Shown here: in pieces, positions 1 through 56,642 of the stretch
Layout: every line of letters begins with the position of its first letter
Position numbering within the stretch: the stretch's first letter is position 1
Source: Felis catus
Lineage: Eukaryota
Assembly (NCBI RefSeq): GCF_018350175.1
Contig: NC_058386.1
Location: 126,480,001 to 126,544,000 of the forward strand
Direction: 5' to 3'
Length of the DNA stretch: 64,000 nt
Translations under genes and position numbers: made by a program
Notes under the pieces: model-generated
What the model was told of the DNA's origin: nothing
Databases searched by the model: none
Seen by the model: only the letters and a program-made list of their open reading frames with translations

Positions 1-171
1 CCTTTTGTATAGGTAAGCGGGTAGAGCTCATCACGTGTTCTCAACATCCACCATAAGTAGACCTCAAGTAAGAGGACGTGACGCCACCAGGCCCCGCACA
101 TAGTCCATCCTGAATTTCCCTGGGAACTGGGGTGGCCGTGTGTATTAGGTCGTGGCTGTTTCAGACGGTGC

Positions 172-588
172 GTTTGTGTTCCCTCCCCCACATTAATATG
201 CTGAAGCCCTAAACCCCAGTGTGGCTGTATTCGGAGATGGGACCTTTGAGGAAGTAAGTTTAAATGAGGTCATAAGAATGGGGCTCTGGTCCAATAAGAG
301 TGGTGTCCTTATAAGAGAGACACCAGAGAGCACCCCCCCTCTTCCTCTCCCTCCCTCCCCGCCCCTACTCCCCCGCTCTCTCCTCACCTGCACTGAGGAG
401 AGGCCATGTGAGGACAGAGGAGAAGGTGGACCTCTACAAGCAAGGAAGCAAATTCTCACCAGAAGCTGAATTTGCTGGCACCTTGATCATGGACTTCTAG
501 CATCCAGAACTGTGAGAAAATAAATTTCTGCTGTGTAAGCCACCCAGTGTGAGGTACTTTGCTATAGCAGCTTGAGCAGACTAATACA
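172..588 (+). mobile_element. MaLR LTR (MLT1-type); mirror copy at ~20005-20421 (-)
   Basis: Typical MLT1 motifs: atgctgaagccctaaaccccag, aaatgaggtcataag, ggtgtccttataaga, aataaatttctgctg, and terminal gactaataca. Confidence 0.8.
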
Positions 589-829
589 ATTAATCGGCTT
601 TATCCAAGGAAAAAATAAGCTTTTTCATATCTTTATGACAGGAGCTAGTTTTGCAACTTGGAGCAAGGTGCCTACTGAAGTTAGGCTTCTACCCTCCCAC
701 AGAAACTGAAGATCGGGACACAATCTTGCTTGATGTTTACATTCCAAAGAGATGTTTCCCAGGTCCTTGAAGAACACATTCCTGGGCTATAAAGATGGCA
801 AGGGGCTCTTTTAGCCTTTTGTTCCTTAA

Positions 830-832
<3 letters not shown>

Positions 833-870
<38 letters not shown>

Positions 871-1058
871 TATTTATTCATTTATTTATTTATTTATTCA
901 GAGAAGGAGTGGGGGGGGCAGAGAGAAAGGGAGACATAGGATCTGAAGAGTGCTTTCTGCTGACAGCACGGAGCCCGATGCAGGGCTCAAAGTCATGAGC
1001 CATGAGATCATGACCTGAGCTCAAGTCGGATACTCAAGCACTGAGCCACCCAGGTGCC
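833..1058 (-). mobile_element. Carnivore tRNA-derived SINE (CanSINE) with (TTTC)n/(TTTA)n tail; mirror ~19531-19760
   Basis: Contains gagatcatgacctgagc...ctgagccacccaggtgcc. The microsatellite tail length differs between arms. Confidence 0.85.
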
Positions 1059-1633
1059 TCTACCCTTTAAAAATACTACCTGTTTTCAAAGAAACAAAGA
1101 AAGAACTTACAAGTCGTGTAAAGTAAATGCTTTAAGGAAGGGGAGGGGACCATCTCTTCCCATATTTTCAACAGGGAGAATGAAGCCTTTTACTTTATTC
1201 TTTTTTAATAAGCTGTATGGCCAATGTGGGGCTCTAACTCATGACCCCGAGATCAAAAGTCACATGTTCTATGGACTGAGCCAGCCAGGTGCCCCTAAGC
1301 CTCTTATTTTTAATGTGTACATGTTCTTAAAGCAGCTCTCTCTAAAATATGCTGAATCCTGAAAACTTGCTAAGGTCCCTGATTAGTTTGACAGCTCTTT
1401 TGTAGACGCCACTAGATTTTCTATATACGTAATCATGTCTGAGAATGAGGGGGGGTTTTCTTCTTTCTTGCCAATCTGGATGCCTGTTATTGCTTGATTT
1501 GTCTTCTCATCACGGGTTGGATCCTCCTGCTTCTCTGCATACCTGGTAATGTTGGGCTGGATGCCAGACAGTGTGATTTTTCCTTGGGTTCTGGATGGCT
1601 TTGTATTCCTGTTTTAAAGGTTAGAATTTTCTC

Positions 1634-1812
1634 TTTTTATTTTGGAGACAGAGAGAGCGGGGGAGAGGGGCAGAGGGTGAGAGAGAGAATCTTGAGCAGG
1701 CTCCACGCTCAGCACAGAACCCGACTCCGGGCTCGAACCCATGACCCTGGAGCCATGACCTGAGCCAAAATCGAGAGTCAGACGCTCAACCAACTGAGCC
1801 ACCCAGGTGTCC
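1634..1812 (-). mobile_element. CanSINE; mirror ~18779-18958
   Basis: Contains gagccatgacctgagcc...gacgctcaaccaactgagccacccaggtgtcc. Confidence 0.85.
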
Positions 1813-3189
1813 TTGGATGTCTTTGTATTCCTAAACATAGTCATGAGCTTTGCTCAGGGATGCTGGTAAGTGAGTGGGAAAAGATTGATCCTTTTGAGTC
1901 TTGGCTTTGAAGATTTGCTGCGTGGGACCAGAACAGCTCAGTGGAGGATTCGTTTTTCCCGCTACACTACTGAGGCAAGACCCTTCTGAGTGCCCTGCCC
2001 AAGGCCTCCAGAATTACGCGGTCTGTCCTCCCTGCCGGTGGGGATAGCCACCAGTCTCTGTCCTGCTTGAGGGGTCGGCACAATTACCTTTCCTCCTTTA
2101 AGATGGCTCTTTCTCTGGCTTCACATGGTTTGCTCACACACTTGTGCTGATCAGTGGTGTGCTGCACACTCCAGCAGGACCCTCTGTGTATACGTGGGCA
2201 TCTCACCAATCAGCACTTCCCTTCCCACTTAGAGCTGCGTTTTGTCTCTTAGAACCAAAGTACTCCAACTCATACAGATGAGAACGGTCAGTGGGTTTCA
2301 AGCAACAGACTCAGGAAATGCGGGGTGATTTGGGTGATCCGCAATGACTTACTGGGTGAAGCTGGGGGGAGGCCAACAGACTCCCATTCACATCGCAGGA
2401 CAGGGAAGCAGAGAACCCAACTGTCACCAGTGCGCAAGCTGGACCATGTGTTCTCCGAAGGCAAACTCTAGGTAGAGTTTGGGCACACGCTGCCGGGGGA
2501 AACCATTTTTAAAGGTGACCACGTGGTACACGGTCACGTCTGATGGTCTCGGGTAACCCAGAGCCTGGGAACCACTACTCCAATCTTGACATGATTGCGT
2601 CCAGACCCAGAAGGAACCTTCCGGCCTCTCTCTGACCTTGCTGGTGGGGTCCCTTAGCGCAGGCAGCCAAAGTGTGGAGACGTCAAGAAAAACCCACCTC
2701 AGAAAAGGTCCTGAGAGTTGTTTGTTACATTGCCATTGCAATGGTAGCTGGGTCTCCAACCTCCCCGCGTCTCTGTCCTTAATGCAAGAGCACCAAAGAG
2801 TGGCTTCCTCGCAGTTGTCGCGAGGATATCTGACATTGTTGGGCAGACTTGGAGAACCACAAATCCCTCTGAAATGTCACCCGGCTGACTGACACTTCTG
2901 TGAGCTTGCCTCCTGGCATTCCAGAAGAAACCAATTTCCTCTGCTTGGGAGAGAGTTTCTCTATGTCTCCTCTGTCCTTTTTCCTCTCTTCCTCCCTCCC
3001 TTCTCTTCTACTCACTCTCCCCTCCTCCTCCTCCTCCTCCTCCTCCTCCTTTTTCCTCTCCCCTCCTCTCTCTTTCCTCCCTTCACTCCCAATGTTCCAG
3101 ACCATGTCCTTCAGATCATTGCCCTAGACAGGCCATCCTGTACCACCCAACCTAAATTAGCTGGAACAACAAAAGTGCAAGATTAAACT

Positions 3190-3549
3190 GAAGGGGGGTT
3201 TAGAATTTGCTGAAGATGACATTTCACCTCAAGGGAGAAATACAGATTATTCGCTAAGTGGTTTGGGACACCTTGACTAAAACCTTTTGGAAAGAAAACA
3301 AACTTACATACCAATGTTCTTTCTCACGAAAATTACCTCCCAGGATGTTAAAGTTTTAAAGTACTAGAAGATGTTCTCAGTGAATATTTTTGTAATTTTA
3401 TACTGAGGAGGGCCCTTTCATAGGAAATGCAAACCGCAAATTATACTGAAACAATGGATCACATAAACAAAAAAATTTTAAGCCACTCTATACCAAAAGA
3501 CCAGGAGCACAGATAAAATGAAGAAATGGCAAGGAAAGGTATTTTCCAA
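3190..3549 (+). mobile_element. Old L1 fragment (mirror 17028-17400; a diverged related fragment lies at ~50620-51200)
   Basis: A-rich L1 ORF2-3' type sequence (gacatttca...agtactagaagatg...taattttata...), with the same motif order at 50620-50860. Confidence 0.55.
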
Positions 3550-4070
3550 TTATAACAAAACTTTGATATNNNNNNNNNNNNNNNNNNNNNNNNNNNNNNN
3601 NNNNNNNNNNNNNNNNNNNNNNNNNNNNNNNNNNNNNNNNNNNNNNNNNNNNNNNNNNNNNNNNNNNNNNNNNNNNNNNNNNNNNNNNNNNNNNNNNNNN
3701 NNNNNNNNNNNNNNNNNNNNNNNNNNNNNNNNNNNNNNNNNNNNNNNNNNNNNNNNNNNNNNNNNNNNNNNNNNNNNNNNNNNNNNNNNNNNNNNNNNNN
3801 NNNNNNNNNNNNNNNNNNNNNNNNNNNNNNNNNNNNNNNNNNNNNNNNNNNNNNNNNNNNNNNNNNNNNNNNNNNNNNNNNNNNNNNNNNNNNNNNNNNN
3901 NNNNNNNNNNNNNNNNNNNNNNNNNNNNNNNNNNNNNNNNNNNNNNNNNNNNNNNNNNNNNNNNNNNNNNNNNNNNNNNNNNNNNNNNNNNNNNNNNNNN
4001 NNNNNNNNNNNNNNNNNNNNNNNNNNNNNNNNNNNNNNNNNNNNNNNNNNNNNNNNNNNNNNNNNNNNNT
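3550..4070. other. Assembly gap (521 N); other gaps at 26309-26476, 47463-47594, 60536-60697
   Basis: Runs of n in the sequence. Confidence 1.
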
Positions 4071-4296
4071 TCATAGGTGAGAACTGATTGGCTACAGAAG
4101 GGACTGCTTGGTGGGAAAAAATCACAGGTCAGGAGGCATTACCAGTGGTCCGTGTGGACAGTTGCTCTGGGCATATCCGGAATTGCATTGTGGAGTAAAG
4201 GGGTGAAGCATTGTGAGAGAGCGCTTTGTCCTTCAGTGATGCCTTGAGAGGGTGGGCGGATTCAAAGTTGGGTCTCAGGTGGCTGGTGGAGGCCCC

Positions 4297-5461
4297 GTGA
4301 GGGCAGCAGACGAAGGCACGGGTGCCGTGGGCGTGGTGGTGGGCGCAGCAGGTGGTGGCCAGTGTGTGCCAGGTGGACCTCGTGGTGTCAGTGGCCCCAG
4401 AGTCCCTGGTGGTTCGGGTGGTGCCTGTGACCCTGGCCATCCCAGCAACCCCGGAGGCCTGAGCGATCCGGAAAGAACCAGCATTGTGGGAGAGGTAGGT
4501 GCCGCCGCTCTGGTGGCGCTCTCCAAATGGAGCGGGCGCCACCCTACACACCAGGTCCTGGTGGATGATGCCGCGCCTGGCGCTAGAGGTCCTGGAAACC
4601 GACTGCTTCAGTTGTATCCTATTCAAGGAGTCCCAGCGGGCTGGACGGCAGGGGGATGGGCTGGAGGTGGTCTGGCGCGCGGCGGGGTGGGGTGTGGGGG
4701 GGAGACTTGGGGAAGTGGAGTTGAAAGGGGAGCAGGAGGGAGCTCCGGGCACCTGGAGGGTATCGGCTAGGGTTTGGCCCGTGCTGACAGAGGATGGGGA
4801 GTGGGGTGGACCGCCTGATGGGGACTGAAGCGGTAGGGACAATGCTATCCGGGGTGGCCTGGCTGTATAGGGTGGGAGGTTGTGGACAGCCTGAGGGTCA
4901 GCCTGGGGTGGGGAAGGCAGGCCTCACTGAAGAGGAGGCCTGAGGCACAGGCAAAATTTAGTACTGTGGATGGTGCCTTAACCCAGTCTCCACCAGCACC
5001 CTCACTATACCTTTCCCCTCGGCCATGGATGCGGAGATTGCCCACAGGTTCCTGACTCCAAACGAGGAGCTCCAGGAGCCAGTTCGGGAGGAGCTCCATG
5101 TGAACGGCAGCATCCTGACTGTGTTAGTTCTAGAACGGTCCAGGGAGAGGGTGGTGGCAGGTGACCAGGGACAAGGTCAATTCCGGAGGAGCTGTAACGG
5201 AGACAAGGGAAACAGGAAAGGAGTGAGTCGAAGGAAGGAGTGTGGTGCTCTAGGATCGTTGCTGTGTGAAGGGGCGGAGCGGGGAATGTGCCCCACCGGC
5301 CCTCTAACTTGACTTATTTTTTCCTACCTCGTAGCCGCTTGACTGCCGATGACCCTGGCCAGCTCCAAATGTCCATCACCTCCTGTCTTGGCCAGCTTTC
5401 CCTAGTGATACGGGCCATGCAGATCATCATGCCCCCCTTTTTCACAAAGCCGCAGCAGTGA
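4297..5461 (+). CDS. CTAG1/CTAG2(NY-ESO-1/LAGE-1)-family gene A (Pcc1 domain); no in-frame ATG, GTG at homologous start; functional status uncertain
   Basis: Exons 4297-4613, 4997-5122, 5335-5461 splice to an open 189-aa frame. Exon 1 is Gly-rich and ends ARGPGNRLLQ(F). Exon 2 reads TLTIPFPSAMDAEIAHRFL...EELHVNGSILT. Exon 3 reads VRLTADDPGQLQMSITSCLGQLSLVIRAMQ. This resembles NY-ESO-1 ARGPESRLLEF...KEFTVSGNILTIRLTAADHRQLQLSISSCL. Both introns are phase 2. Confidence 0.7.
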
Positions 5462-6367
5462 AAAGGTGGCTGGACCCAACTCTGTGTCCCCCCCACATGA
5501 CAGTGATTCCTGCAGCAGCTGCCGTTTTCTTACTGAGGCCGCATCTTTTGCCTATACTGGCCCTTGGGTGCTTCAGATCCACATTTTTTTTTTTTTTTTT
5601 TTTTTTTTTTGGTGATCAAATGGTAACTGCTACTATTCTGTGTCTGGGTTTATTTTTAAAGCATCTACGCCTTCTCCTATTCTCGCCTTTGTTCTCAGGT
5701 AGGGGGAGAGATTCTGACATTCAGATACTCAAGTACTAGAAGGCAATTGAAGAAGACAAGTTAGGCGACGGGAGAAAAAAATTATGTCCTGTTATTCAGG
5801 ACATTAACTACTGTCAACATGTTAGAACTTTTGTTTTAGTTTTATACTAGCATGTACATAGTCATGTATAATACCTGCAGAGTAGGACTTTGTGGCTTCT
5901 CGGCCTTGATTCAGATCTGTGCAGAAGAGCGCTGGGACAGCTGGCTAGGTCGGCCCCACTGCCCATTCTATACTCCCGTGTCATCAGAGGCCTCATTCCC
6001 TGAGGTTCCGAACCCACAATTCTCAGAGCTCCTTGTGGTTGGCTCTCACTTGTATCATCCTTCCCCAAAGTGTTTTTCCAGTTTATTACGCTGCTGCTTG
6101 CTTCCCTGAAGTCCTGACAAGGGTCCTGGAGGAAAACAAAAAGGGGAAGAGGTCTCCCTGAGGTGGGGAGGGGACATGAAGTACATTACCCTTTGCCTTC
6201 CCCTCCAAGACTCTCTTATTTAGCACAACAGTGGGGCCACGTACAAGGCACCCGAGTGGCTGAGGAGGGGAATGGGCGACGCCCCGGTGCACGAGGTGAG
6301 TCTCTAAATCGGAGAGAGGAGGAACAGAGCCTTGCCTGAGGGAGAATTAGCAGTGTCAGCAGAGAGA

Positions 6368-6800
6368 GACTGAGCAGTGGAGAACGCCGTGACTCTATAG
6401 TTACGAATCTGTACCTGAGCGTCTCCAAATAGGTCCTCAGGACAAGTGAGGAAAGTAAAGGCACAGCTGCCTTGTCCTGGAGGCAGGTGTCACAGCAAGA
6501 AGGTGGCCAGTGTCTAGAGCGGCCTGTGGCTGGTGGAAGCATTTCAATGAGCAGTGTCACCAAAGAGCGCCTCAGCCTGAGCCTCGGACTGTCTCTGTCT
6601 GCCCTGTTCTTTGTCACTGCCTACGGGGCAGGCAGCTCTCATCTCCGGGCACGGGCAGGAGGAACCTGCAGCCGGAAAACAAGGATCTTTCAACACGTGC
6701 ACGTCTATAAACCCCGCCCTCGGCCGCCTCTCCAGCAGCTGCTGCCTCTCCAGCGGCTGCTCCCTCACCAATCGTCGCCACGCGCTGTGACGCGTGACCC
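6368..6800 (-). promoter_or_regulatory. Unidentified promoter-like element S (CCAAT, GC box, TATA-like); copies at 36840-37272 and 39790-40135
   Basis: On the mirror copy: ATTGG 36868-36872, GGGCGGGG 36921-36928 and TTTATA 36929-36934 in a CpG-rich setting. The third copy is truncated by L1. Confidence 0.4.
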
Positions 6801-7504
6801 CACTGCACCCACGCAAACCAGTCCCACCTCAGCTCCACCCCCTCCCCACACCCCTAGCCCCTCCCCAGACCTCGTGGGAGGCCGCCAGGCACCACGGCCT
6901 GTTGTCCAGAGGGCCCTGCCTCTTCCTTGGGCTCAGTGTCCCCAGCACGTGGGGCTCCACGACCTCGCAGCGGTTCGTGGAGGGAGATGGGCCACAGCCC
7001 AGACGGACACGGCCCCGCACCCCGTCCCCTTCCCCGGTACCGGTGGACACACCAAAGCGGCCTTTGGAGGGGGCGACTGAGCACAGGTGCGGATCAGATC
7101 GGCGGTCTGGGAAGGTCACGAAGGGGCTCCCGTCGGGGGGCAAGCCTGCCAGTAGCAGGCAAGGAGGAAAGGGATGGCGACTGGAGCTAAAGTAGTTAGT
7201 GGCCACGGAGAACAGGGATGCGGTCGCATAGGGAAAAACCACAGTGCAAAAGGGAAATCACTAAAATCCCAACTTAGGAAGCTACTGTATATGTGCACGG
7301 AAATCCTGCCACGGTAGCCTGAAGTGTAAACACCTCGTATGTCTGTGTGGTGGGATTGAGGGTGGTCCCCACTTCTTTTGTGTGCATTTCTCCCCCAAAA
7401 GGTTCAGAATGACTTTACATGACCTTTGGTGTTTTCAATTCTTTGACATCCTTGTGTGCGTGATCTCTACGCCCCACGTGGTGCGGCACTCACGACCCAG
7501 TGAG

Positions 7505-8610
7505 TGCTTCCACAAGTCAGGCTTGAGAGAGCAGATGATGCCATCCAGGGCGCCGGGCAGCAGCACTCCCCGCACCAACAGCACGACGAGGACCACGCAG
7601 GGGAAGGTAGCCGTGAAGTACACGATCTGGGGCGGGGGAGGGACGGGGGGGGTAACCTGCTCAGAAGGGGCCCTGCGGCCCCGCCTCCCCACTTAGGGGT
7701 CCCCAGCCTCAGCAGGGGGGCAGGCGGGCCACACTCCCCCCACTGTGGTACGGTCCACTCCGAGGTCAAGCGGGAGGCCAGCCTGCAGCCCCCCCTTCTA
7801 CTCCTCAGAGCCTGGGCTCCTCCCGAAGGAAGCGGGGTGCTCAGCTGGCCATCGGCTGCCCCCGCAAGGACAGGTCAGCTGTAGAGAGGGAGGGTGGAGG
7901 CAGGACCTTCCCCAGGTGGGGAGCAGGACATCGGCCTGGAGGCAGGTCCCATGCTTCCTGTGGTTCTCTGCACAGAGGCAGGGTCCTGGGCAGGACGGAG
8001 TGGACTGGGCCGGCCAGAGACAGAGGCGACAGCGAGGTGACCGCGAAGACCTCTGCCTCCGTCCCACCCTCAGCAGAGCAGGACAGGTAGGCAAAGGAGG
8101 GCCACGGGCCGGGTCCCCCCAGGCTGGCCGCAAAGCAGAGAGTGAGGAAGTAGTGAGTGAGGAAGAGAGGGAAACTGGGGCAGGGATGCCCGACACAGGC
8201 AAGTTCAGCTGGGGGTCGCCTGGGCCTGTCCCCTCAGGACGGAAGTCGGCTGGGCTGGAGTGTGGAGGTTGCGGAGCACTACCCAGGCACGCGTGGGAAA
8301 TCCACCGGGCTGGGTTCAAGGACCTGCCCCCGCCTCAGGCCCTGGCCCGGTCACCTCGCATGGCAGGGTCCACCTGCCCCCCCCTAGCGGAGACACCCCT
8401 TCTCCCCACCGGCCATGCTGCCCCCACCCCTGCCATCATCACCCACCCCGACCCGCCGGCCTCCAGCTGTACCTTTCCTGTTGACTTGACCCCCTTGCAG
8501 ACACAGAAGTAGGCCAGCACCCAGCAGGCCTGCAGACACAGGGTCACCTCCCAGTTGAGGGCCCCTGGCACGTCCAGCCCCCCCACCCCGAGAGCCGAAA
8601 GACTTTGTTC
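7505..8610 (-). pseudogene. SLC6A8: SLC6A8 (creatine transporter) fragment, exon 4 - intron 4 - most of exon 5
   Basis: Exon 4 at 8473-8610 ([36 protein letters not shown]) is 138 nt vs the canonical 133, so it is frameshifted. Exon 5 starts at 7626 ([31 protein letters not shown]) and breaks off before its donor. Confidence 0.93.
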
Positions 8611-9164
8611 CTGGGGGGAGGGGGGGACAGCCCGTCAGGGCTGCCGCAGCAGAGGGCAAAGCGACCGGGGAGCTGTCGCCGGGGCGGTGCTCCCCCGAGC
8701 CGCTGCCCTCAAGTCCAGGTGGGCCCCCCTGGGCCCCCGGCCCAAGCCCACAGCCATTGCAGTGGGAGGCAGGAGCCCGGGAGCCCCCGGCCGGAGGCCG
8801 GTCGCGCCCTCGGCGGTGTACCCTCCCCCAGGCTGGCAGGCACTAGGGGACTGACGGCGCCCGGGACCGACAAATGGTGAGGGAGCCAGGCCCATCCCTT
8901 CCAGCTCCCCTAGGGGCCGTGCGGGGTGTGCTCCCTGAGGACAGGCAGGGCCTGGGAGTGGCCCCTGCTCGGCATCCCGCGTAGGCCCCCCCCCCCGGCC
9001 CCCGGGTCGCAGGGCCCCCGGGACACGCAGACCCGAGCCGTACGGGGAGCCCACAGACAGGGACAGGCACGGTGCTGCCCAGAAGCGCCTGAGCGCGGCC
9101 CACGCCTCGATGCCCGGGACCGGGCGGGCGGCGGTCAGCTGGCTGCTGGCAAGTGCGCCCGGCT

Positions 9165-9398
9165 GGCGCCTGCGCAGACACAGGCTTGGGGGGAGGGGCG
9201 GGCCGGGCCGGAAACAGTCACGTGCCAGTGGCCTCACCAGAATGCTCTCGGGGACGTAGGAGCCCGACAGTGACGTCACGCGTCGGGGGGCGCAGCGTCC
9301 GGAACCAGCCTCCATCTCCTCGGGGTCAGCGTCGACCGGATCCAGGCTCTGCCGGCTCGGTGGCAACCAGCTCCGCGGGGTCTGTCTGCGCAGGCGCC
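9165..9398. promoter_or_regulatory. CpG-island promoter region of gene B (NRF1-like x2, GC box, E-box, full CRE); mirror 34238-34471
   Basis: GGCGCCTGCGCA 9165-9176, GTCACGTG 9217-9224, TGACGTCA 9271-9278, TGCGCAGGCGCC 9387-9398. Confidence 0.6.
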
Positions 9399-9524
9399 CT
9401 GGCCATCCCCGACAGCCTTGCGCGCCGAGGGGCCGGGCTTCGCGAGGCCTGCCAGGGGTCTCAGCGGTCGGCCGACAGTGGGCGCAGCGTAGCGGTGGGC
9501 TCTGAGGAGGCCGGTGCGGCGGCC

Positions 9525-10664
9525 ACGAGGGCCCCGGACGACGAAGCGGCCTCTCCGGCCCCGGACGACGGCGCGGAGGAAGTGGCGGTCACGCAGGCCC
9601 CTGACGATGACGGCGCGGACGGCGCGGCGGTCACGCGGGCTCCCGAGGGTGGCGCGGAGGACGCGGGGGCAGGCCCACAGGCCTCCGACGGAGGCACGGA
9701 CGGCCACGACCCCCAGCTTAGCCCCCGAGGTCCCGGTTGCCAGGGCAACTGCAGCCGCCACGATGGCGAGGGTGGCCCTGGCAGCAAGGGAGCAGTGGTC
9801 GAGGGGGCCTGCGCCCCTCCCCTGGCCGAACGGGCCCCGAGGGCCCTGGCCCCCGGTGGAGACGCAGCGCCGGCGGCGGCGGCGGTGACCTCCTCAGGAC
9901 TGCTGGAGTTGTATCCTTTCCGTGGAGCCTGTCTGGGCAGGGGCCGTGGCGGGGTGGCTGGGGAGCAGGGCGGCAGCCCGGGGACGGGACGGACGGGGGC
10001 GGGGGTGGGCAGCCTGGCGGGCCCCCAGGGTGGGGGAAGCGGCTCAGGGTGGGCAGAGGTGGCGGGAGGGAGCGCGAGTGTCCCGGGGGTAGAGGCGGGC
10101 CTCTGAGTGGTCAGGAGGCTTCAGGCCATGGGAACTCCAGGAGCCCGTTGTGCCTTAACCGGGTGCCTCCCAGCAGGCTCACTGTGTCTTTCCGGTCGCC
10201 CCTGGAGGCAGAGATGGCCCGCAGGGCCCTGACTACACACGTCCAACGCCACCGAGGGTTGGCTCAGAAGGAGCTTTGCGTGAGGGGCAGCGCCCTGGCC
10301 GTGTGAGTCCTCCAACAAGAGTATGCGCGGGACGGGTGGGCGGTGGCGGCGGGTGCCGTGGTCGCATCTCTGCCTTCCAGTGCCGTCGTGGAGGCCCCGA
10401 CGCACGCTGTTAGGTGGAAGGCGGGGGGGTGGGGGGTTGTGTGGGGGAAGGGGCTGGTGCCCTGCACCTCCACAGCAGGTCTCCCCTTTAACCGGATTTC
10501 CCTCTTCCCTCACTTCTAGGAGATGGACTACTGAAGACCCCATCTGCTTCCGAGTTTCCGTCAACTCCTTCTTGGACCGGCTTCCCCTGGTGATACGAAA
10601 CATTCGCGCCTTGGGGTCCCGGCCTCCGCGGCGCCTAGGTCCGGGAAAGGGGGCCGAGGCCTAA
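9525..10664 (+). CDS. LAGE3: LAGE3-like Pcc1-domain gene B; ACG at homologous start, no exon-1 ATG; functional status uncertain
   Basis: Exons 9525-9910, 10174-10302, 10520-10664 give an open 219-aa frame. Exons 2-3 read FRLTVSFRSPLEAEMARRAL...QKELCVRGSALAVRWTTEDPICFRVSVNSFLDRLPLVIRNI, resembling LAGE3 FTLSVPFPTPLEAEIAHGSL...VRWKAEDCRLLRISVINFLDQLSLVVRTM. It is convergent with a PLXNA3 3' end, as native LAGE3 is. Confidence 0.72.
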
Positions 10665-11955
10665 CCTGGTAGCCCTCACTGGGCAAGGCACGGGGCGTTG
10701 ACACTTGGCGTCCTCGCCACTTTACTATCGGGGGTCTAACGTTCTGCAGGTCCGGGCCTCGGTGGCTCTTGGCCCACTTCAGTTCCTTCCCTGCGCCCGG
10801 AGGGACGGGCGCTTACGTGTTTGTCACTGCACAACATGAAACTGAGCTACTCTTTTGTGTCCGAGTTTCTTCTCAGTTCCTGCGCCTCCACATTTTCTTA
10901 CCTTTGTTCTGGTGTTGGAAGGGAGGTTCTGGGAATCGTAGTCCAGCAGCCCAAGCTTATCGAAGACGACTCAGGGAGAGGAAAATCAGGTCCTATATTC
11001 AGCGGTAAATACTGCTGACGTTTTGGAATACGTTCCTAGTTGTATTTACCCGTTGAATGGATAGCAACGTATAACGTATCCATTTTCCAGTTTAGCGTTA
11101 ACTTTTCTCCGGATCCTTTTTGTTTCGTTTTGTTTTGTTTTTGTTTTTCCCCGTTGAACGTACTAGCTTTCCCACTCCCTAAAACCCTTCAAAAACTGTT
11201 ATCCAGGAGACACACAAATGTATTATTACATAATGTTGAGCAGTCGGGTCGTTCTCAGCTTTGCCCCTATTATGGGTCGTGTGAGTCAATGGGATTCTTG
11301 AACAGAAGTCTTTGCGCGAACAGTTACTTCCTTCAGATCGTTTCCAAGAGGTAGAATTCCCGCGTTCTATAGCTTCTCGGCACACAAGTGCTCTCCAGAA
11401 AAGGCGCCCCGCCGGCAGAAGTCTGGTCTCCCCGCATCACCAACCAGTAGGGTGGCTTCCTACCGAAGTAGAAGACTCCTTTTGTACCAGGGAAATAAGC
11501 ACGGAAACACTAGAATAGGAATTTTGGGGCTTACTGGCCTTGTTTCCGATGAGCAAGGGGGTGGTGCCACAAGTGGCTACGGGTTTGGGGGCGGGGTGGG
11601 GGGTGGTTAGCTCCCTCTGAGTAGCTTGTGTCTTGGAACCTCGCTAAACAGGAGTGCTAGCCTCACGAGGGTTCCCTCGGAGTTTCTACATGCATGGTCG
11701 TGATCTCTGCAAGCAAACACGGTTTTGGTTCCTTCCTTTCCGGCCTTGCCGGGGCTACGGGGGCGGGGGGAGGGAACAGGCTGACACTGGACAGATGGGA
11801 AGCAAGAGCAGGAAGGCACATGGCAGAGAACCAAATCCTGGATCCAGCCACGCCTGAAGACAGAACTATCCGCCCCCCGCCCCCGCCACAATCGTTCAGT
11901 TACACACATCCAGAAACTCTCCCTTTGGTTAAGCCAACATGAATCCTTTTTTTCT

Positions 11956-11995
<40 letters not shown>

Positions 11996-12019
11996 TCCCT
12001 TTCTCTTTTGTTTGAATGC

Positions 12020-12224
12020 TTTTATTTAGTGTTTGAGAGCAAGACAGAGACAGCGTGAGCGGGGAAGGGGCAGAGAGACAGAGAGGGAGACACAGAATCT
12101 GAGGCAGACTGCAGGCTCTGAGCTGTCGGCACAGAGCTCGACGCAGGGCTCAAACCCACGAACTGTGAGATCGTGACCTGAGCCGAAGTCAGACCCTCAA
12201 CCGACTGAGCCACCCAGGCACCCC
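12020..12224 (-). mobile_element. CanSINE (feliform type); mirror 31436-31640
   Basis: Contains gagatcgtgacctgagccgaagtcagaccctcaaccgactgagccacccaggcacc. Confidence 0.9.
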
Positions 12225-14481
12225 CGTCGTGAATACTTTTTTTTGCTTTTCTTTTTGTCTGTCTTCACTTGTAATAGAAAAGTCTTGTCCTTTATTGACT
12301 CGAGGAACCGTAGGTTTTCTTGTCACTTCACCTGAGAACGTGGCTCTCCCTTCTTTTAACGGAGAAACTGGGCTCTTTAAGTTTACAAAGGCATTGGCTC
12401 CTAGCTGGTAGGCCTTCAAGCCGTATGGTGGTAGAGTCTTCTGTGGGTAAGAGTCCAGAGAGGGAGGGGAGGGACTGCAAGGGGCAGCTGGAGGAAAGGG
12501 ACAAAGAGAAGGGGCACTGGGACCCACCCTTTCCGGATAGGGCTCCCAAGACTGGCCCGGAATTGTGGGGCCAGATCGTCAAGAGACCGGAACTTAGTGT
12601 GAGCCTCCCTCCCTCTCCCAGCAAAGCCCAGAGTTAGGCCACCGCCCTGGCCCCACAGACGGACTGCTGAAGGCGCCGGGCGGCCTTAACACGTCAGTCA
12701 GGTCACAAAACAAGTCGATTCCAACGCGTCCCCGGGCTCCCCTCCCAGAGACGAGCCAGAGCCCTGCCCCGCGGCCCGCCGCGTCAGATGTGATCCGGCC
12801 CGCATCTTCCACGGCCTCCTTCCCTCCCCTCTCCACCTTGCTCACTCTCGGATCCAGCCACACTGGCCTCCTCCCTTCTCTGAAACACACCAGGCCCAGG
12901 CCTGCCTCAGGACCCTTGCACTGCCTCTTCCCTGCCTGGACCTCTCGTCCCCCGGGGTTCCATCTGGCCCACTCAAATAGCATTCCTGGCCGCTCTCCTT
13001 AAGGTTGCGTCCCACGCTCTCCCCACCTGCATTACTTTCACAGGTGTCGGGGGGTAAGAAGCAGGTGGGCCCGTCAGCATGGAGGTGCACGTGCGGCAGT
13101 AAAGCGTCGTGGGACACGAAGGAGCTTGGGTGCTGTCGATGACCCTAGGGAGTCTTGAACGGAGCGGGACGGGATGCAGCTTACGTCTTATCAGGTTCCC
13201 GGTGCCTGCTGCGCTGGGAAGGGGACGAGGGCAGGCAGGACAGAAGTGGGGAGACTGGCACGCAGGCGAGAGACCCCCAGGCTGCGGCCAGTGGAGGTGG
13301 GGAGAAGGGAACGGGTTCCGACCGGATCTTGACGGGAGAGCCACCGGGGTTTGCTGGCACGGATCGGACGTGGCCCTGGACCTCCTCAGATGCGCGGGAC
13401 CCGTGCAACGGGTCACCCTTCCTCCCACAAAGGGAGCCCAGCTCCTCCAGAGTCCAACAGCCTCCCCACCTGCCTCCCTGCTCGCCGACCACCCACCTGC
13501 CACACACTGCCACCGTTTTCCCGACGTTTAATTCAGAAACAAGGTTCCAGGAACAACGACAAAGAAGCTCATGCCAAAACAGAGGGGACAGCTGGGTTTC
13601 CGGGACCACGCGCCGGGGCCAGATTCCTCGGAGGGGGAAGAGGGAACAGAGGGGTAAGGCACTGCCGCCTCGGCCACTCGGGGCGGGCGCAGGACAGGGC
13701 AGCGGGGGTGAGGGGTCCGGGCTGAGCGGGCACCACGCCGAGGAAGCTGGGCGCTCGGGCCTGGAGAAGGAGACTTCCAGAGCCCCCAGGCCCACGTGGG
13801 GCCCTGGCACGAACCCGCTCATAGCTCCCCAGGTGCTGGGGACAGGGCGCCCGAGAAAGGTACGGTCCGACCCCCGAGAAGTCCGGAGGGGATGCCGGGA
13901 CCCAGCCGCGGGGAGACCCCTGGGCGCAGCCACAGTCTGGGGACGGCTTCGCCGCATCACCCTGGGCGCCCCCCTCCTCGCCATCAAGTGCTGCTGGTGT
14001 CGGGGGCCCCTGCTCGGACCCGGCGGGGCCGGCCACGGCCAGGGGCAGGTGCCAGAGGCGAGGCCGAGGCTGACCGTGCCACCAGGGAGCCAGGACGACC
14101 CAAGGACAGAAGGGGCGTGAGGTTGTCCACATCCCAGAGAAGGGGCACGTGGTGACAGACGGACACGGTGAGGTGCAGATAAATTAAATAAATAGGTGGT
14201 TGGGGGTATAAACAGGAAGAGGGGGCAGGGGCTGGCACGACCCGGGGGCACGAGGGTGGGAGGGCGGGGATATTGCTGCTGCCAGGTCAGGACCCTTGGT
14301 CCCGTCACCATCGCCCCCACGCAGGGCCCAAAGAAAGGCACTAATGAAGGGGGCCCGGGTGTGCGCAGGGCACGAGAGTCCGGTGACCACCCCATCCCCG
14401 CCCCCGTGCCACCCGATCCAGGGCTCGGCCCCGAGGTCATCTCAGGCCTGGGACGCCCCCTCCTCACCGGTTCCGCCACCC

Positions 14482-14577
14482 TTAGCTGTTGCCGGACAAG
14501 AGGCTGATGGTCTGTTCCAGGTTTTGCCCCAACTTAGGCTTCCGACAGGAGGCGTCTCGGTCCAGAGCGGTGAGGAC
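14482..14577 (-). pseudogene. PLXNA3: PLXNA3 terminal coding exon, orphan duplicate (3'UTR-derived sequence continues to lower coordinates)
   Basis: Preceded by a pyrimidine-rich acceptor. VLTALDRDASCRKPKLGQNLEQTISLLSGNS* vs recalled human PLXNA3 C-terminus ILTALDRDASCRKHKLRQKLEQIISLVSSDS* (23/31 identical). No upstream PLXNA3 exon recognised. Confidence 0.85.
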
Positions 14578-14869
14578 CTGGGGGAGGAGGGCCCCCCCGG
14601 AGCCGGGCTGGCGAGGAGGGGCCGCTCCCTCCCTTGCCAAGCCGTCCTCCCCTGCCTGAGCTCTTTTGTCCCTCCTGCGTCCACGCACCCCGCTCTCTGC
14701 GGGTCCCCGGCACGTGGGAAGGGCTGCAGCCCCCCACCTCTGCACACGCTGCGACTTGGCCACCCCGAAGCCACCGCCTTCTCTGCTCGGCGGCCACAGT
14801 GCGGCCCTTCCCGGGAGTGGTTTGGACCCGCTGTCCCCAAACGCCCCGTCCCCTCCTGGCCCACACCCC

Positions 14870-16330
14870 ATCTCCCCATCCCCTCCTGAACCCCAAACCC
14901 GCACATGATCTCCCCGTCCCCTACTGACCCGGAATCTGGACCCAACCTCCAGGTCCCCCCCTGACCCCACCCCACACCCAATGTCGCTATCCCCTCCGGA
15001 CCCCATCTGCACCCCGCACCCGATCACCTTGTCCCATCCTGACCCCCACCCGACACCCAAATTTCCCAGCCCCTCCTGACCCCACCTTGCACCCAACATC
15101 CACGTACCCTGCTGACCCCCACCCCGCACCCCAAATCCCCATCCACTCCCGATCCGGAATCGGCACCCAACCTCCAGATCCCACCTGACCCCCACCCTCC
15201 ACCCAATCTCGCCATCCCCTCCTGACTCCCACTGACACCCCGCACCCGATCACCTGGTCCCTTCCTTAACCCCACCCGACACCCGAATTTCCCGGTCCGT
15301 CCTGACCCCACCCCGCACCCAAGCCCCATCCCCTCCTGAACCCCAACCCCACACCTGATCTCCCCATCTGCTACTGACCTGGAATCTGCACCCAACCTCT
15401 GCGTCCCCTCCTGACCCCCACTCCTGCCAAGCACCCGATCACTTCGTTCTCTCTTGTCCCCCACCGCCACCCTGCACCTGATTTCCCCGTCCCCTCCTGA
15501 CTCTTACCCTGAACCCGATCTCCCTCTCACCCCCTGACCCCCCCGCCACACCCCACCTCCCCATCCAATCCTGATCCCCACCCCTACCTGGCACCCGATC
15601 TCCATGACTCCTCACACCCACCCCTCCACTCACCTTGCTGGACACTCGTGATTCCCACTCCACACCTGATATTCCTGTGTCCTCCTGACCCCCACCCTAC
15701 CCCCCATCCAACCTCCGCCATCCTCTTGACCCCCACTGCCCACTCAACCTCCACGCCCCACCTGGCCCCCACCCCACACCCCAAATCCCCATCCACTCCC
15801 GATCCGGAATCTGCACCCAACCTCCAGTTCCCACCTGACCCCCACTCTGCACCCAACCTCCCATCCCCTCCTGACCCTCATCCCATACCCGACCTCCCTG
15901 TCCCGTCCTGACCCCTACTCCTCCCCTGACCTCCTCATCCACTCCTGACCCCCAACCCTACCGAGCACCCGATCTCCCTGACTCCTCCTGACCCCCACCC
16001 CCCACCCAACTTCCCGGTCCCTTCCCGACTGCCACCCCGCACCTGACATTCCTGTGTCCTCCTGACACACACCCCCACCCCGCACCCGAGTTCCTTATCC
16101 CCTCCAGACCTCCAGCCCGCACCCCTTGCCAAACCTTCCCGTCTCCTCCTGACCCCCACCCTGCACCCCGTACCCCATCTCCTCATCGCCTCCTGACTCC
16201 ACCTCGCACCTGGTCTCCCCGTCCCCTCCGGAACCACACCTCACATCCCATCTCCCTGCCCCCTCCCAACTCCCACCCTGCGCCTGACTTCCTCGACCCC
16301 TCCTGACCCTCACCCCACACCCGACCCTGT
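14870..16330. repeat. C-rich (G-rich on minus) degenerate minisatellite
   Basis: Dozens of variant units built on CCTCCTGACCCCCACCCCGCACCC(GATC/AA) and CCGGAATCTGCACCCAACCTCCAG modules. Confidence 0.92.
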
Positions 16331-17027: not shown

Positions 17028-19718
17028 ATATCAAAGTTTTGTTATAATTGGAAAATACCTTTCCTTGCCATTTCTTCATTTTATCTGTGCTCCTGGTCTT
17101 TTGGTATAGAGTGGCTTAAAATTTTTTTGTTTATGTGATCCATTGTTTCAGTATAATTTGCGGTTTGCATTTCCTATGAAAGGCCCTCCTCAGTATAAAA
17201 TTACAAAAATATTCACTGAGAACATCTTCTAGTACTTTAAAACTTTAACATCCTGGGAGGTAATTTTCGTGAGAAAGAACATTGGTATGTAAGTTTGTTT
17301 TCTTTCCAAAAGGTTTTAGTCAAGGTGTCCCAAACCACTTAGCGAATAATCTGTATTTCTCCCTTGAGGTGAAATGTCATCTTCAGCAAATTCTAAACCC
17401 CCCTTCAGTTTAATCTTGCACTTTTGTTGTTCCAGCTAATTTAGGTTGGGTGGTACAGGATGGCCTGTCTAGGGCAATGATCTGAAGGACATGGTCTGGA
17501 ACATTGGGAGTGAAGGGAGGAAAGAGAGAGGAGGGGAGAGGAAAAGGAGGAGGAGGAGGAGGAGGAGGAGGAGGGGGAGAGTGAGTAGAAGAGAAGGGAG
17601 GGAGGAAGAGAGGAAAAAGGACAGAGGAGACATAGAGAAACTCTCCCAAGCAGAGGAAATTGGTTTCTTCTGGAATGCCAGGAGGCAAGCTCACAGAAGT
17701 GTCAGTCAGCCGGGTGACATTTCAGAGGGATTTGTGGTTCTCCAAGTCTGCCCAACAATGTCAGATATCCTCGCGACAACTGCGAGGAAGCCACTCTTTG
17801 GTGCTCTTGCATTAAGGACAGAGACGCGGGGAGGTTGGAGACCCAGCTACCATTGCAATGGCAATGTAACAACAACTCTCAGGACCTTTTCTGAGGTGGG
17901 TTTTCTTGACGTCTCCACACTTTGGCTGCCTGCGCTAAGGGACCCCACCAGCAAGGTCAGAGAGAGGCCGGAAGGTTCCTTCTGGGTCTGGACGCAATCA
18001 TGTCAAGATTGGAGTAGTGGTTCCCAGGCTCTGGGTTACCCGAGACCATCAGACGTGACCGTGTACCACGTGGTCACCTTTAAAAATGGTTTCCCGGCAG
18101 CGTGTGCCCAAACTCTACCTAGAGTTTGCCTTCGGAGAACACATGGTCCAGCTTGCGCACTGGTGACAGTTGGGTTCTCTGCTTCCCTGTCCTGCGATGT
18201 GAATGGGAGTCTGTTGGCCTCCCCCAGCTTCACCCAGTAAGTCATTGCGGATCACCCAAATCACCCCGCATTTCCTGAGTCTGTTGCTTGAAACCCACTG
18301 ACCGTTCTCATCTGTATGAGTTGGAGTACTTTGGTTCTAAGAGACAAAACGCAGCTCTAAGTGGGAAGGGAAGTGCTGATTGGTGAGATGCCCACGTATA
18401 CACAGAGGGTCCTGCTGGAGTGTGCAGCACACCACTGATCAGCACAAGTGTGTGAGCAAACCATGTGAAGCCAGAGAAAGAGCCATCTTAAAGGAGGAAA
18501 GGTAATTGTGCCGACCCCTCAAGCAGGACAGAGACTGGTGGCTATCCCCACCGGCAGGGAGGACAGACCGCGTAATTCTGGAGGCCTTGGGCAGGGCACT
18601 CAGAAGGGTCTTGCCTCAGTAGTGTAGCGGGAAAAACGAATCCTCCACTGAGCTGTTCTGGTCCCACGCAGCAAATCTTCAAAGCCAAGACTCAAAAGGA
18701 TCAATCTTTTCCCACTCACTTACCAGCATCCCTGAGCAAAGCTCATGACTATGTTTAGGAATACAAAGACATCCAAGGACACCTGGGTGGCTCAGTTGGT
18801 TGAGCGTCTGACTCTCGATTTTGGCTCAGGTCATGGCTCCAGGGTCATGGGTTCGAGCCCGGAGTCGGGTTCTGTGCTGAGCGTGGAGCCTGCTCAAGAT
18901 TCTCTCTCTCACCCTCTGCCCCTCTCCCCCGCTCTCTCTGTCTCCAAAATAAAAAGAGAAAATTCTAACCTTTAAAACAGGAATACAAAGCCATCCAGAA
19001 CCCAAGGAAAAATCACACTGTCTGGCATCCAGCCCAACATTACCAGGTATGCAGAGAAGCAGGAGGATCCAACCCGTGATGAGAAGACAAATCAAGCAAT
19101 AACAGGCATCCAGATTGGCAAGAAAGAAGAAAACCCCCCCTCATTCTCAGACATGATTACGTATATAGAAAATCTAGTGGCGTCTACAAAAGAGCTGTCA
19201 AACTAATCAGGGACCTTAGCAAGTTTTCAGGATTCAGCATATTTTAGAGAGAGCTGCTTTAAGAACATGTACACATTAAAAATAAGAGGCTTAGGGGCAC
19301 CTGGCTGGCTCAGTCCATAGAACATGTGACTTTTGATCTCGGGGTCATGAGTTAGAGCCCCACATTGGCCATACAGCTTATTAAAAAAGAATAAAGTAAA
19401 AGGCTTCATTCTCCCTGTTGAAAATATGGGAAGAGATGGTCCCCTCCCCTTCCTTAAAGCATTTACTTTACACGACTTGTAAGTTCTTTCTTTGTTTCTT
19501 TGAAAACAGGTAGTATTTTTAAAGGGTAGAGGCACCTGGGTGGCTCAGTGCTTGAGTATCCGACTTGAGCTCAGGTCATGATCTCATGGCTCATGACTTT
19601 GAGCCCTGCATCGGGCTCCGTGCTGTCAGCAGAAAGCACTCTTCAGATCCTATGTCTCCCTTTCTCTCTGCCCCCCCCACTCCTTCTCTGAATAAATAAA
19701 TAAATAAATGAATAAATA

Positions 19719-19763
<45 letters not shown>

Positions 19764-20592
19764 TTAAGGAACAAAAGGCTAAAAGAGCCCCTTGCCATCT
19801 TTATAGCCCAGGAATGTGTTCTTCAAGGACCTGGGAAACATCTCTTTGGAATGTAAACATCAAGCAAGATTGTGTCCCGATCTTCAGTTTCTGTGGGAGG
19901 GTAGAAGCCTAACTTCAGTAGGCACCTTGCTCCAAGTTGCAAAACTAGCTCCTGTCATAAAGATATGAAAAAGCTTATTTTTTCCTTGGATAAAGCCGAT
20001 TAATTGTATTAGTCTGCTCAAGCTGCTATAGCAAAGTACCTCACACTGGGTGGCTTACACAGCAGAAATTTATTTTCTCACAGTTCTGGATGCTAGAAGT
20101 CCATGATCAAGGTGCCAGCAAATTCAGCTTCTGGTGAGAATTTGCTTCCTTGCTTGTAGAGGTCCACCTTCTCCTCTGTCCTCACATGGCCTCTCCTCAG
20201 TGCAGGTGAGGAGAGAGCGGGGGAGTAGGGGCGGGGAGGGAGGGAGAGGAAGAGGGGGGGTGCTCTCTGGTGTCTCTCTTATAAGGACACCACTCTTATT
20301 GGACCAGAGCCCCATTCTTATGACCTCATTTAAACTTACTTCCTCAAAGGTCCCATCTCCGAATACAGCCACACTGGGGTTTAGGGCTTCAGCATATTAA
20401 TGTGGGGGAGGGAACACAAACGCACCGTCTGAAACAGCCACGACCTAATACACACGGCCACCCCAGTTCCCAGGGAAATTCAGGATGGACTATGTGCGGG
20501 GCCTGGTGGCGTCACGTCCTCTTACTTGAGGTCTACTTATGGTGGATGTTGAGAACACGTGATGAGCTCTACCCGCTTACCTATACAAAAGG
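17028..20592. repeat. Inverted repeat 1, right arm
   Basis: Reverse complement of 1-3549. Differences seen are mainly microsatellite and homopolymer lengths. Confidence 0.97.
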
Positions 20593-21549: not shown

Positions 21550-22195
21550 CAGCAGGCACCAGTGGCAGAATTCTGGCTACCAGAGTGGTTCGCCTAATTG
21601 GCAAGTGAGGAATTTCCACCTCAGTGTTGGAGCACGTGGAAGCGTCATGAAGAGTGAAAACTACGCTCTCTCGAGTTATGTCGAATGGCGTGACTATCCC
21701 CTGCCTGCTGTGGCCCACATCGACAACGTCCGCCAGCCAGAAGGCCTTGAAAGAGAAGAGGCCTTCCTGCAGCATCCTCTCCACTGATGAAAAAGCTGAA
21801 TCGTGCCACATTCAGCTCAACGAGAGCTTGGCTGAAACGAACAGGAGCACAAACAAGCAGAAGATGGTTGTAGGCACCACCATGTTCTCCATCAGCCACT
21901 GCTCTCGTTCTGATCTGGGAGAAGCACTGCGTGTACGGCCCCATCCCGCAACCTCTGAAGAGGAGTGGGTGGCCAAGCAGACCGAGAGGAGGCTCGACTT
22001 GGAAGGCCAGCCCAATCCACGGCTTCTCAGTCAAGCGGGACTACGACAAAAACGAGTGGAAGAAACAGTAGCCCGCCACCCGGCCATCTGAGCCTCGCCT
22101 TGTCCTGCAACCTCCACGCAGCTCGGTGTACTTGCTGGGAACTGTTGTGTCGCAGCACCGATGCTAACAGGTGAGCAGTTTACGTGACAAAAAAT
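21550..22195 (+). pseudogene. COX4I1: COX4I1 processed pseudogene
   Basis: Intronless and frameshifted. Fragments [58 protein letters not shown] and DYDKNEWKK match COX4I1. The start ATG is replaced by ATT at 21570. A 3'UTR remnant ends in a short A tract at ~22190. Confidence 0.92.
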
Positions 22196-28110: not shown

Positions 28111-28800
28111 GGCAAGGAGGTCTGGTGCGGGGTGGGTGTCAGGAGGGGATGGGGAAGTCGGGTGCAGGTTGGCGGTGGGGACACAAGGGGACAAAGTGAT
28201 CGGGTGCTTGGTAGGAACAGGGGTCAGGAGGGGAAGTGGAGGATGGGTGCAGATTCTGGGTCAGGAGTCAATGGGGAATTGGGGTGCAGGGTGGGGGTCA
28301 GGAGGGGATGGGAGGTTGGGTGTGGGGTGGTGTCAGGAGGGGCCGGGAAATTCGGGTTTCGGTTGGGTGGGAGTCAGGAGAAGACAAGGAGGTCTGGTGC
28401 GGGGTGGTTGTCAGGAAGGGATGGGGACATCGGGTGCGGTATGGGGTTGGGGTCAGGAGGGGACGAGGTGATCGGGTGTGGGGTGGCGGTTGGGGTCAGC
28501 AGGGAAAGATGAGGTTTGGTGTGGGGTGGGGGCCAGGTGGGGCGTGGAGGTTGAGTGGGCAGTGGGGGTCAAGAGGATGGCGGAGGTTGGATGTGGGGTA
28601 GGGTGGGGGTCAGGAAGACACAGGAATATCAGGTGTGGAGGTTGGGTCCAGATTCCGGATCAGGAGAGGATGGGGAATTGGGTGCGGGGTGGGGATCAGG
28701 AGGGGACCTGGAGGTTGGGTCCAGATTCCGGGTCAGTAGGGGACGGGGAGATCATGTGCGGGTTTGGGGTTCAGGAGGGGATGGGGAGATGGGGTGTGGG
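28110..28800. repeat. G-rich minisatellite, shorter mirror of 14870-16330
   Basis: GGGTG(G)GGGTCAGGAGGGG-type units. 28512-28632 is the reverse complement of ~15665-15785. Confidence 0.92.
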
Positions 28801-47079: not shown

Positions 47080-47096
47080 GCACTGGTCACATCAAA

Positions 47097-53524: not shown

Positions 53525-56642
<3,118 letters not shown>

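Follow-up and report, generated by a model that had tools for sequence, protein, structure and literature searches.

The DNA studied here is a stretch of 64,000 nucleotides from Felis catus (NCBI RefSeq assembly GCF_018350175.1, contig NC_058386.1, positions 126,480,001 to 126,544,000 of the forward strand), referred to below as the window. Within it, at positions 7505-14577, the last exon of PLXNA3, a LAGE3-like gene of the Pcc1 family (gene B) and a piece of the creatine transporter gene SLC6A8 lie next to each other in one arm of a large inverted repeat. We consider it fairly probable that this block is a mosaic segmental duplication, built stepwise inside an X-linked CTAG/LAGE3-like cluster of a felid. 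An earlier note on this DNA, made from its letters without database searches, had taken the block for a snapshot of a housekeeping KEOPS gene being converted into a cancer-testis (CT) type gene. The main result of the present analysis is a correction of that first reading: the LAGE3-like gene is old and annotated in many mammals, and it is probably decaying, not newly recruited.

Layout of the inverted arms

The large inverted repeat of the window pairs 4070-15523 with 39559-28116. In a base-by-base alignment, the near-identical part of the arms (4070-14958 / 39559-28702) showed 29 differences, i.e. ~99.7% identity, with 17 single-base differences; the remainder of the match is a common 36/73-bp minisatellite at the inner arm ends only. 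As seen in the assembly, the arms span 10.9 kb, are >99% identical and are inverted, with a gap adjoining the left arm; the k-mer depth ratio of the arm-type junction to the gene C junction is 1.2-1.3 (both discussed below). At the inner ends, the unique DNA adjoining one arm differs from that adjoining the other. Positions 7505-14577 make up the inner two-thirds of the left arm and are mirrored by 29083-36133 in the right arm. The analysis was centred mostly on this right-arm mirror copy, in which genes are marked by a prime; the left arm within 7505-14577 has the identical pieces, in mirror order and with identical translations. The features of the two arms are as follows.

7506-9234, minus strand: SLC6A8-pseudogene cassette of the left arm, made up of intron-3-derived DNA, exon 4 (8473-8610), intron 4 and most of exon 5 (7507-7626)
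9525-10664, plus strand: gene B, left arm; exon 1 9525-9910, exon 2 10174-10302, exon 3 10520-10664 including the stop (tblastn with jaguar P0002 and Geoffroy's cat P0005); the repeat map gives 100% identity of the arms here
10665-14481, no strand: interval of 3.8 kb between the stops of B and the PLXNA3 relic, GC-rich, with a carnivore-type short interspersed element (SINE) at 11945-12262
14482-14577, minus strand: orphan PLXNA3 last exon, left arm, translation identical to the right-arm copy
14877-16326, no strand: C-rich 36/73-bp minisatellite at the inner end of the left arm, inside which the near-identity of the arms stops
28100-28830: G-rich mirror minisatellite at the inner end of the right arm
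29083-29178, plus strand: orphan PLXNA3 last exon, right arm, with a ...ccccag acceptor upstream and a stop at its end; PDB match
29179-32970: right-arm counterpart of the 3.8-kb interval, from the PLXNA3 exon to B'
32972-34111, minus strand: gene B', right arm; exon 1 33726-34111, exon 2 33334-33462, exon 3 32972-33116
34402-36133, plus strand: SLC6A8-pseudogene cassette of the right arm; exon 4 35028-35165, exon 5 36014-36133

The order of pieces that the earlier note had given, i.e. PLXNA3 last exon, spacer DNA that the note likened to an untranslated region (UTR), B' on the minus strand and SLC6A8 exons 4-5 on the plus strand, was confirmed on both arms, and its view of the arm as a mosaic of pieces from different Xq28 genes is supported. 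The sources were also said to be distant Xq28 loci. This does not apply to PLXNA3, LAGE3 and CTAG, which are close neighbours in human, where the order PLXNA3, LAGE3, UBL4A, SLC10A3, FAM3A, G6PD, IKBKG, CTAG1B, CTAG1A lies within a 246-kb interval (PMC11846235); SLC6A8 is the exception.

A 345-bp piece of the arm's 'element S' (36928-37272, 6368-6712) recurs with 97% identity at 39791-40135, just outside the right arm and inverted relative to it. Pfam searches of the long open reading frames (ORFs) of 'element S' gave no domain.

Gene B and its relatives

There are six Pcc1-family genes in the window: the CTAG-like gene A and gene B, each with one copy per arm, gene D, located in the spacer between the arms, and gene C. 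Gene B has three exons and two introns with consensus splice sites (GTATCC and GTGAGT donors, AG acceptors), and is arranged tail-to-tail with the PLXNA3 relic exon. Exon 2 matched positions 4-46 of the Pfam Pcc1 profile (PF09341) with 18 bits, and exon 3 matched positions 47-74 with 22.3 bits (cut-off 20.9). The exons of the window genes were searched and placed singly, and three orthologues of B from other cats, 91-100% identical to it per exon, were used as its full-length proxies: Lynx canadensis P0001, Panthera onca P0002 (isoform X1) and Leopardus geoffroyi P0005. Both P0001 and P0002 carry PF09341, and the best solved-structure match of the lynx orthologue was human LAGE3 (6gwj_B; LAGE3 residues 80-139, E 1.5e-8). 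Word-based protein searches found 1 and 3 relatives, and a full HMMER search, which brought up P0005, found 103 family members, with source names for 30.

The tree of the C-terminal domain has two sides. One contains LAGE3 proper (bears, deer, manatee, tarsier) with a nested clade of seven rows, putatively non-mammalian LAGE3; the other contains a 47-row 'LAGE3-like' clade (93% support) together with 'cancer/testis antigen 1-like' proteins of camels, warthog and others. Within the LAGE3-like clade the B proxies follow the species tree, with cats joined by hyenas and meerkat (96%) and then by dog (88%), and further out lie sea lion, hedgehog, jerboa, vole, a mouse relative, squirrel, kangaroo rat, colugo, rhino, mouse lemur and sloth. 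The exon-3 tree placed B in a 49-row LAGE3-like branch with 99% support, and placed A, C and D with CTAG1-like proteins (95%); B exon 3 did not group with 'cancer/testis antigen 1' proteins. Over exons 2 and 3, B is identical to polar bear LAGE3 at 36 of 80 residues (~45%), to dog LAGE3-like at 60 of 90 and to sloth LAGE3-like at 53 of 90. A single clade of the carnivore B genes and bear LAGE3 was rejected by the approximately unbiased (AU) test (log-likelihood difference 72, p-AU 0.004).

Judged by these sequence comparisons, B is the felid orthologue of an old 'LAGE3-like' paralogue that is present in at least eight placental orders and is already annotated, and not a fresh LAGE3 copy. The grouping of B with LAGE3 that the earlier note had anticipated was not recovered, B being placed outside LAGE3 proper and inside the LAGE3-like clade. 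As this clade spans several orders, B is not a recent copy of housekeeping LAGE3, and the picture of a KEOPS gene caught in conversion to a CT-type gene is not supported, given the distribution of the clade across placental orders and the AU test (p = 0.004). In addition to its tree placement, B differs from LAGE3 proper in lacking an ATG start and in not lying between complete PLXNA3 and UBL4A genes: the SLC6A8 relic is found 290 bp upstream of B, where UBL4A would stand, and on the other side there is only the last PLXNA3 exon.

The start of B reads ACG in both arms (34111-34109 and 9525-9527), whereas jaguar and Geoffroy's cat have ATG. From 34111 the window reads ACG-AGG-GCC-CCG-GAC-GAC, and the jaguar and Geoffroy's cat proteins begin or continue M-R-A-P-D-D. 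No other in-frame ATG was found in B exon 1 up to 34483. The lynx model is 77 residues long and starts at a Met inside exon 2. The presence of ACG instead of ATG in either arm therefore makes it most likely that B is decaying, or else is translated only from the exon-2 Met, giving a truncated product as in the 77-residue lynx model. No reads fell on the B exons in one oligo-dT RNA run (tissue unknown, 2% read), and metatranscriptome contigs retain the introns. The 5' end of gene D is 76% identical to the 5' end of B (24820-24986 versus 34087-34257).

The SLC6A8 cassette and its probable source

Between B and the outer part of each arm lies a cassette containing SLC6A8 exons 4 and 5, which matched the Pfam SNF profile at positions 169-244. 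The best match of these exons was the human creatine transporter 9kr7 (residues 223-262 and 261-299; E 5e-17 and 2e-13), ahead of the next SLC6 paralogues (~1e-9 to 1e-10) by 7 and 3 orders of magnitude. In the left arm the SNF motifs are at 8556, 8487 and 7620 on the minus strand. A longer copy of the same sequence is found elsewhere in the window, head-to-head with gene C:

51615-52726, minus strand: gene C, CTAG1-like, head-to-head with the SLC6A8 pseudogene, ATG at 52726
52890-56650, plus strand: 5'-truncated SLC6A8 pseudogene, consisting of 635 bp of upstream DNA and then exons 4 to 12 in order

The arm segment 34402-36134 shows 93.6% identity to 52890-54633, located 18 kb further right in equal orientation, and the left-arm cassette is 93.4% identical to 54633-52890. 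The copy at 52890 alone runs on through exons 6, 7, 8, 9, 10, 11 and 12. The homology between the two starts sharply at 34402/52890, which defines the junction J2 between the 5' flank of B' and the cassette (34401|34402), and stops just as sharply at 36133/54632, which defines J3 (36133|36134), inside exon 5 and 14 nt before its donor. In the pseudogene copy the 52890 boundary is 164 bp upstream of the gene C ATG.

Neither copy is intact. The long copy has an insertion in a G-run of exon 4, which shifts the frame by +2 (mod 3), and a 5-nt insertion in exon 10; exon 4 of the arm copy has a different G-run sequence with the equal +2 shift. Because both copies share this exon-4 frame shift, they probably descend from one disabled ancestor. 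Six-frame motif scans found no trace of SLC6A8 exons 1-3 anywhere in the window. The frameshifts and the absent exons 1-3 identify the copy at 52890 as a 5'-truncated pseudogene. Native SLC6A8 was considered as an interpretation of 52890-57000 and was rejected because of the two frameshifts, the numerous replacements in exons 4-5 and the absence of exon 1-3 motifs from the whole window.

These results suggest that the SLC6A8 piece of the arm arose secondarily, as a 1.73-kb copy of the neighbouring pseudogene's 5' end, with 52890-56650 as the probable source. The earlier note had the piece coming from a separate, more proximal SLC6A8 locus, which fits neither its 93.6% identity to a pseudogene within the window nor the common class of exon-4 frameshift. 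The substitution divergence between cassette and pseudogene is 80/1719, i.e. 4.65%, which at mammalian neutral rates would correspond to ~10-20 million years. The block retains introns and splice sites (the PLXNA3 acceptor, SLC6A8 intron 4 and the two B introns), as in a DNA-level segmental duplicate and not a retrocopy. Annotation of another cat carries the same junction: in the Geoffroy's cat model P0005, named 'collagen alpha-1(I) chain-like', residues 15-116 lie antisense on the cassette and residues 130-404 lie on B. Since one model spans both, the cassette-B junction is common to cats.

Three further observations concern these sequences. Nine of the 17 single-base differences between the arms, all of them transitions, are clustered in 340 bp of the cassette (7757-8095 / 35543-35881), where the right arm matches the pseudogene (52890-54633) at six sites and the left arm at three. 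A 104-bp stretch of cassette intron 4 (35368-35470) recurs with 86.5% identity at 56986-57089, downstream of pseudogene exon 12. Exon 13 of the pseudogene was not found in 56700-57300.

The orphan PLXNA3 exon

The last PLXNA3 exon has the translation VLTALDRDASCRKPKLGQNLEQTISLLSGNS*. Among solved structures, its best match was the C-terminus of mouse Plxna3 (3ig3, residues 596-626 of 627; E 2e-6; 22/31 identical), after which the match list holds only designed repeat proteins and miniproteins. The C-terminus of Plxna3 is conserved, and the exon in the window has 9 of 31 residues changed relative to mouse Plxna3 (71% residue identity); given these nine replacements, the exon is a drifting non-coding relic. 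No upstream plexin exons were seen among the listed ORFs of the window, and the DNA upstream of the relic is AT-richer and rich in minisatellite and SINE sequence. Native PLXNA3 in the window was rejected as an interpretation, on the diverged exon, the minisatellite- and SINE-rich upstream DNA and the lack of any plexin-like ORF among those listed.

Under neutrality, the relic would carry ~0.14 substitutions per site, corresponding to an age of tens of millions of years with a wide error, i.e. older than the cat radiation and possibly younger than the LAGE3-like clade. The 3.8-kb interval between the relic and B may be former PLXNA3 3'UTR or intergenic DNA. Pfam searches of its long ORFs gave no domain, and the family of its SINE has many copies in the window. 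The earlier proposal that B is a duplicate of the PLXNA3-LAGE3 interval moved into the CTAG cluster stands in part: the tail-to-tail pairing copies the native adjacency, but the recent origin is contradicted by the AU test (p = 0.004).

Support from independent reads

We used sequencing runs of the same organism to examine the region around J2. At least 17 DNA-like runs carry at least 98% of the sampled 31-mers of 32700-35020, and the 20 runs with any part of this region stem from 13 studies. Single contigs in the runs X1, X9 and X15 span J2, extending from 31700, 31842 and 32524, respectively, to 34431. This end point lies exactly 30 nt past J2, which is where the start of the repeated cassette should produce a fork at k=31, and a second contig carries the gene C-type flank to the identical 30 nt. 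The contigs of these three runs therefore show that J2 is real.

At the outer end of the left arm the assembly is more complicated. A gap of 500 N (3570-4069) adjoins the arm, and to the left of the gap is a second inverted duplication interleaved with the main one, 1-3569 being a 99.6% inverted copy of 17028-20592. This sequence mirrors a segment of the palindrome spacer and not the DNA beyond the right arm. Either the structure is complex and nested, or the scaffolding is at fault.

History of the block and alternative explanations

The stepwise history that we favour would have begun with the duplication of the PLXNA3 3' end together with its tail-to-tail neighbour LAGE3, which would have given rise to, or would later have been joined to, the LAGE3-like lineage of B; the PLXNA3 exon would then have drifted as non-coding DNA. 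A 5'-truncated copy of SLC6A8, beginning at exon 4, came to lie head-to-head beside gene C and decayed to the pseudogene now seen there. The first 1.73 kb of this pseudogene would next have been copied to a position 290 bp upstream of the start codon of B, a step recorded by the junctions and the 4.65% divergence; its presumed direction is from pseudogene to arm, and its presumed date is ~10-20 million years ago, before the cat lineages separated. Going by the assembly, the whole block together with the CTAG-like gene A would have become two inverted arms, ~99.7% identical and kept alike. Finally, B lost its ATG in this lineage, where the codon now reads ACG. Non-allelic recombination, replication-based template switching and gene conversion in an ampliconic region suffice for these events, and the block is an ordinary product of segmental duplication in an X-linked cancer-testis amplicon.

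Several points weigh against this history. The clade used in the AU test was chosen after the tree had been inspected, and the trees use 45-99 columns, with the deep split between LAGE3 proper and the LAGE3-like and CTAG-like proteins supported at 70%. With only 9 of its 31 residues changed, the PLXNA3 relic may be younger than the LAGE3-like clade, so that the exon and B perhaps do not come from one founding duplication. The k-mer depths of the arm-type and C-type contigs in three runs were 38.7:30.5, 28.5:23.8 and 70.9:60, giving ratios of 1.2-1.3 where two arms against one copy would give 2; at least one arm is then not real, or else gene C has a second copy as well.

The relic's apparent youth is the starting point for an alternative that we regard as rather unlikely, in which the relic and B were joined secondarily. 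A carnivore or feliform duplication, or a conversion tract from PLXNA3-LAGE3, would have overwritten or flanked an ancient LAGE3-like gene, bringing in the exon and downstream DNA and no new coding sequence. The 71% identity of the relic suggests ~30-75 million years under neutrality, which is younger than a clade containing sloth and hedgehog; however, this age is estimated from 31 codons. A recent duplicate of the PLXNA3-LAGE3 interval in the cat lineage, fused to a piece of native SLC6A8 and with a KEOPS gene becoming a cancer-testis gene, is very unlikely, even though the PLXNA3 exon and the Pcc1 gene are tail-to-tail as at the native locus and B is more LAGE3-like in sequence than A, C and D. 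Orthologues of B in many placental orders, its 45% identity to bear LAGE3 over exons 2-3, the AU test against a carnivore-specific origin and the missing ATG all speak against such an event, as does the derivation of the SLC6A8 piece from the neighbouring pseudogene with its common exon-4 frameshift class.

The depth ratios, the 500-N gap by the left arm and the inverted copy at 1-3569 would also fit an origin of the mosaic joins or the second arm in misassembly or a duplicated haplotype. Likewise, the arms differ at 5 sites in 31700-34431, and each of three other individuals shows a single sequence there, with no within-individual variants; the left-arm base is found at 33646 in one of the three and at 31825 in all three. 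We nevertheless consider an artefact improbable, as J2 is present in contigs of independent runs, with at least 98% of words in at least 17 runs, the Geoffroy's cat gene model spans the cassette and B, each arm continues at its inner end into unique DNA of its own, and X palindromes with CTAG genes are known in human (PMC11890787). The question of arm number raised by the depths leaves the mosaic itself unaffected, and a stepwise segmental duplication remains our preferred account of the block.

A wider possibility, tentative and on the doubtful side, is that the PLXNA3 exon is a fossil of the founding duplication of the eutherian CTAG/LAGE3-like (NY-ESO-1) family, with B as the founder and A, C and D as derivatives.

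Other genes of the window

The remaining Pcc1-family gene of the spacer is

23748-24880, minus strand: gene D, three exons, with an in-frame ATG (MQAPGDG…) and a CTAG1-like exon 3

The nearest relatives of the two A' exons are not the same: exon 2 (38516-38644) shows 74% identity to a 'LAGE3-like' protein of the giant panda, which the tree places on the LAGE3 side, and exon 3 (38181-38303) groups with CTAG1-like proteins. This difference suggests exon-scale gene conversion within the family.

Three plus-strand regions contain remnants of unrelated genes. A stop-free ORF in the spacer (21654-22088; Pfam COX4, E 5e-11, profile positions 24-122 of 138) has the appearance of a processed pseudogene of cytochrome c oxidase subunit IV. 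At 45872-47079, ORFs of different frames overlap, and olfactory-receptor-like motifs (…MACDRYAAI…) were recognised in them by eye; they are probably a frameshifted olfactory receptor pseudogene. At 47069-47760, ORFs resembling integrin-linked kinase (ILK) without visible introns, with an N run (47463-47594) inside, are likely a processed ILK pseudogene.

Relation to known systems

Literature searches found no published description of this block. It provides a worked example of how ampliconic X regions build genes from scraps, in which a relic exon records the origin of a gene family and the 5' end of a pseudogene is re-used as upstream sequence for two family members. If it is true that the PLXNA3 relic is common to several orders, it would map and date the birth of the NY-ESO-1/CTAG family, a major tumour-antigen family.

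In human, the arms of the CTAG1A/CTAG1B (NY-ESO-1) pair, which lies in distal Xq28, carry IKBKG-derived sequence. The cat block resembles this pair in having Pcc1-family genes in inverted near-identical X arms near PLXNA3-LAGE3-G6PD-IKBKG, but the cat arms hold a CTAG-like gene (A) and a LAGE3-like gene (B) together with PLXNA3 and SLC6A8 relics, and their number of two is taken from the assembly alone. CTAG1A/CTAG1B have been described as a palindromic, low-diversity paralogue pair (PMC11890787), and CTAG1 and CTAG2 as Pcc1-family paralogues of LAGE3 (PMC9889334).

Gene B shares the three-exon structure of the annotated LAGE3-like genes (P0002, P0001 and Canis XP_038445285), shows 92-100% identity to the cat models per exon and is grouped with these genes at 96% support; it differs in that the cat B starts with ACG, and the PLXNA3 and SLC6A8 relics are in no annotation seen. 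With LAGE3 proper, the KEOPS subunit (6gwj_B), B shares the Pcc1 fold family and, as in the native gene, a tail-to-tail arrangement with PLXNA3. However, over exons 2-3 its identity to bear LAGE3 is only ~45%, it is placed outside the LAGE3 clade and it is without an ATG.

The SLC6A8 copy also has a human counterpart in SLC6A10P, a 16p11.2 segmental, intron-containing duplicate of SLC6A8 that is now a pseudogene. SLC6A10P is named in PMC8070484 and PMC2966418. The cat copy is likewise an intron-containing SLC6A8 duplicate turned pseudogene, but it lies on the X in the CTAG cluster, is without exons 1-3, and its 5' end has been copied again, to a site upstream of another gene.

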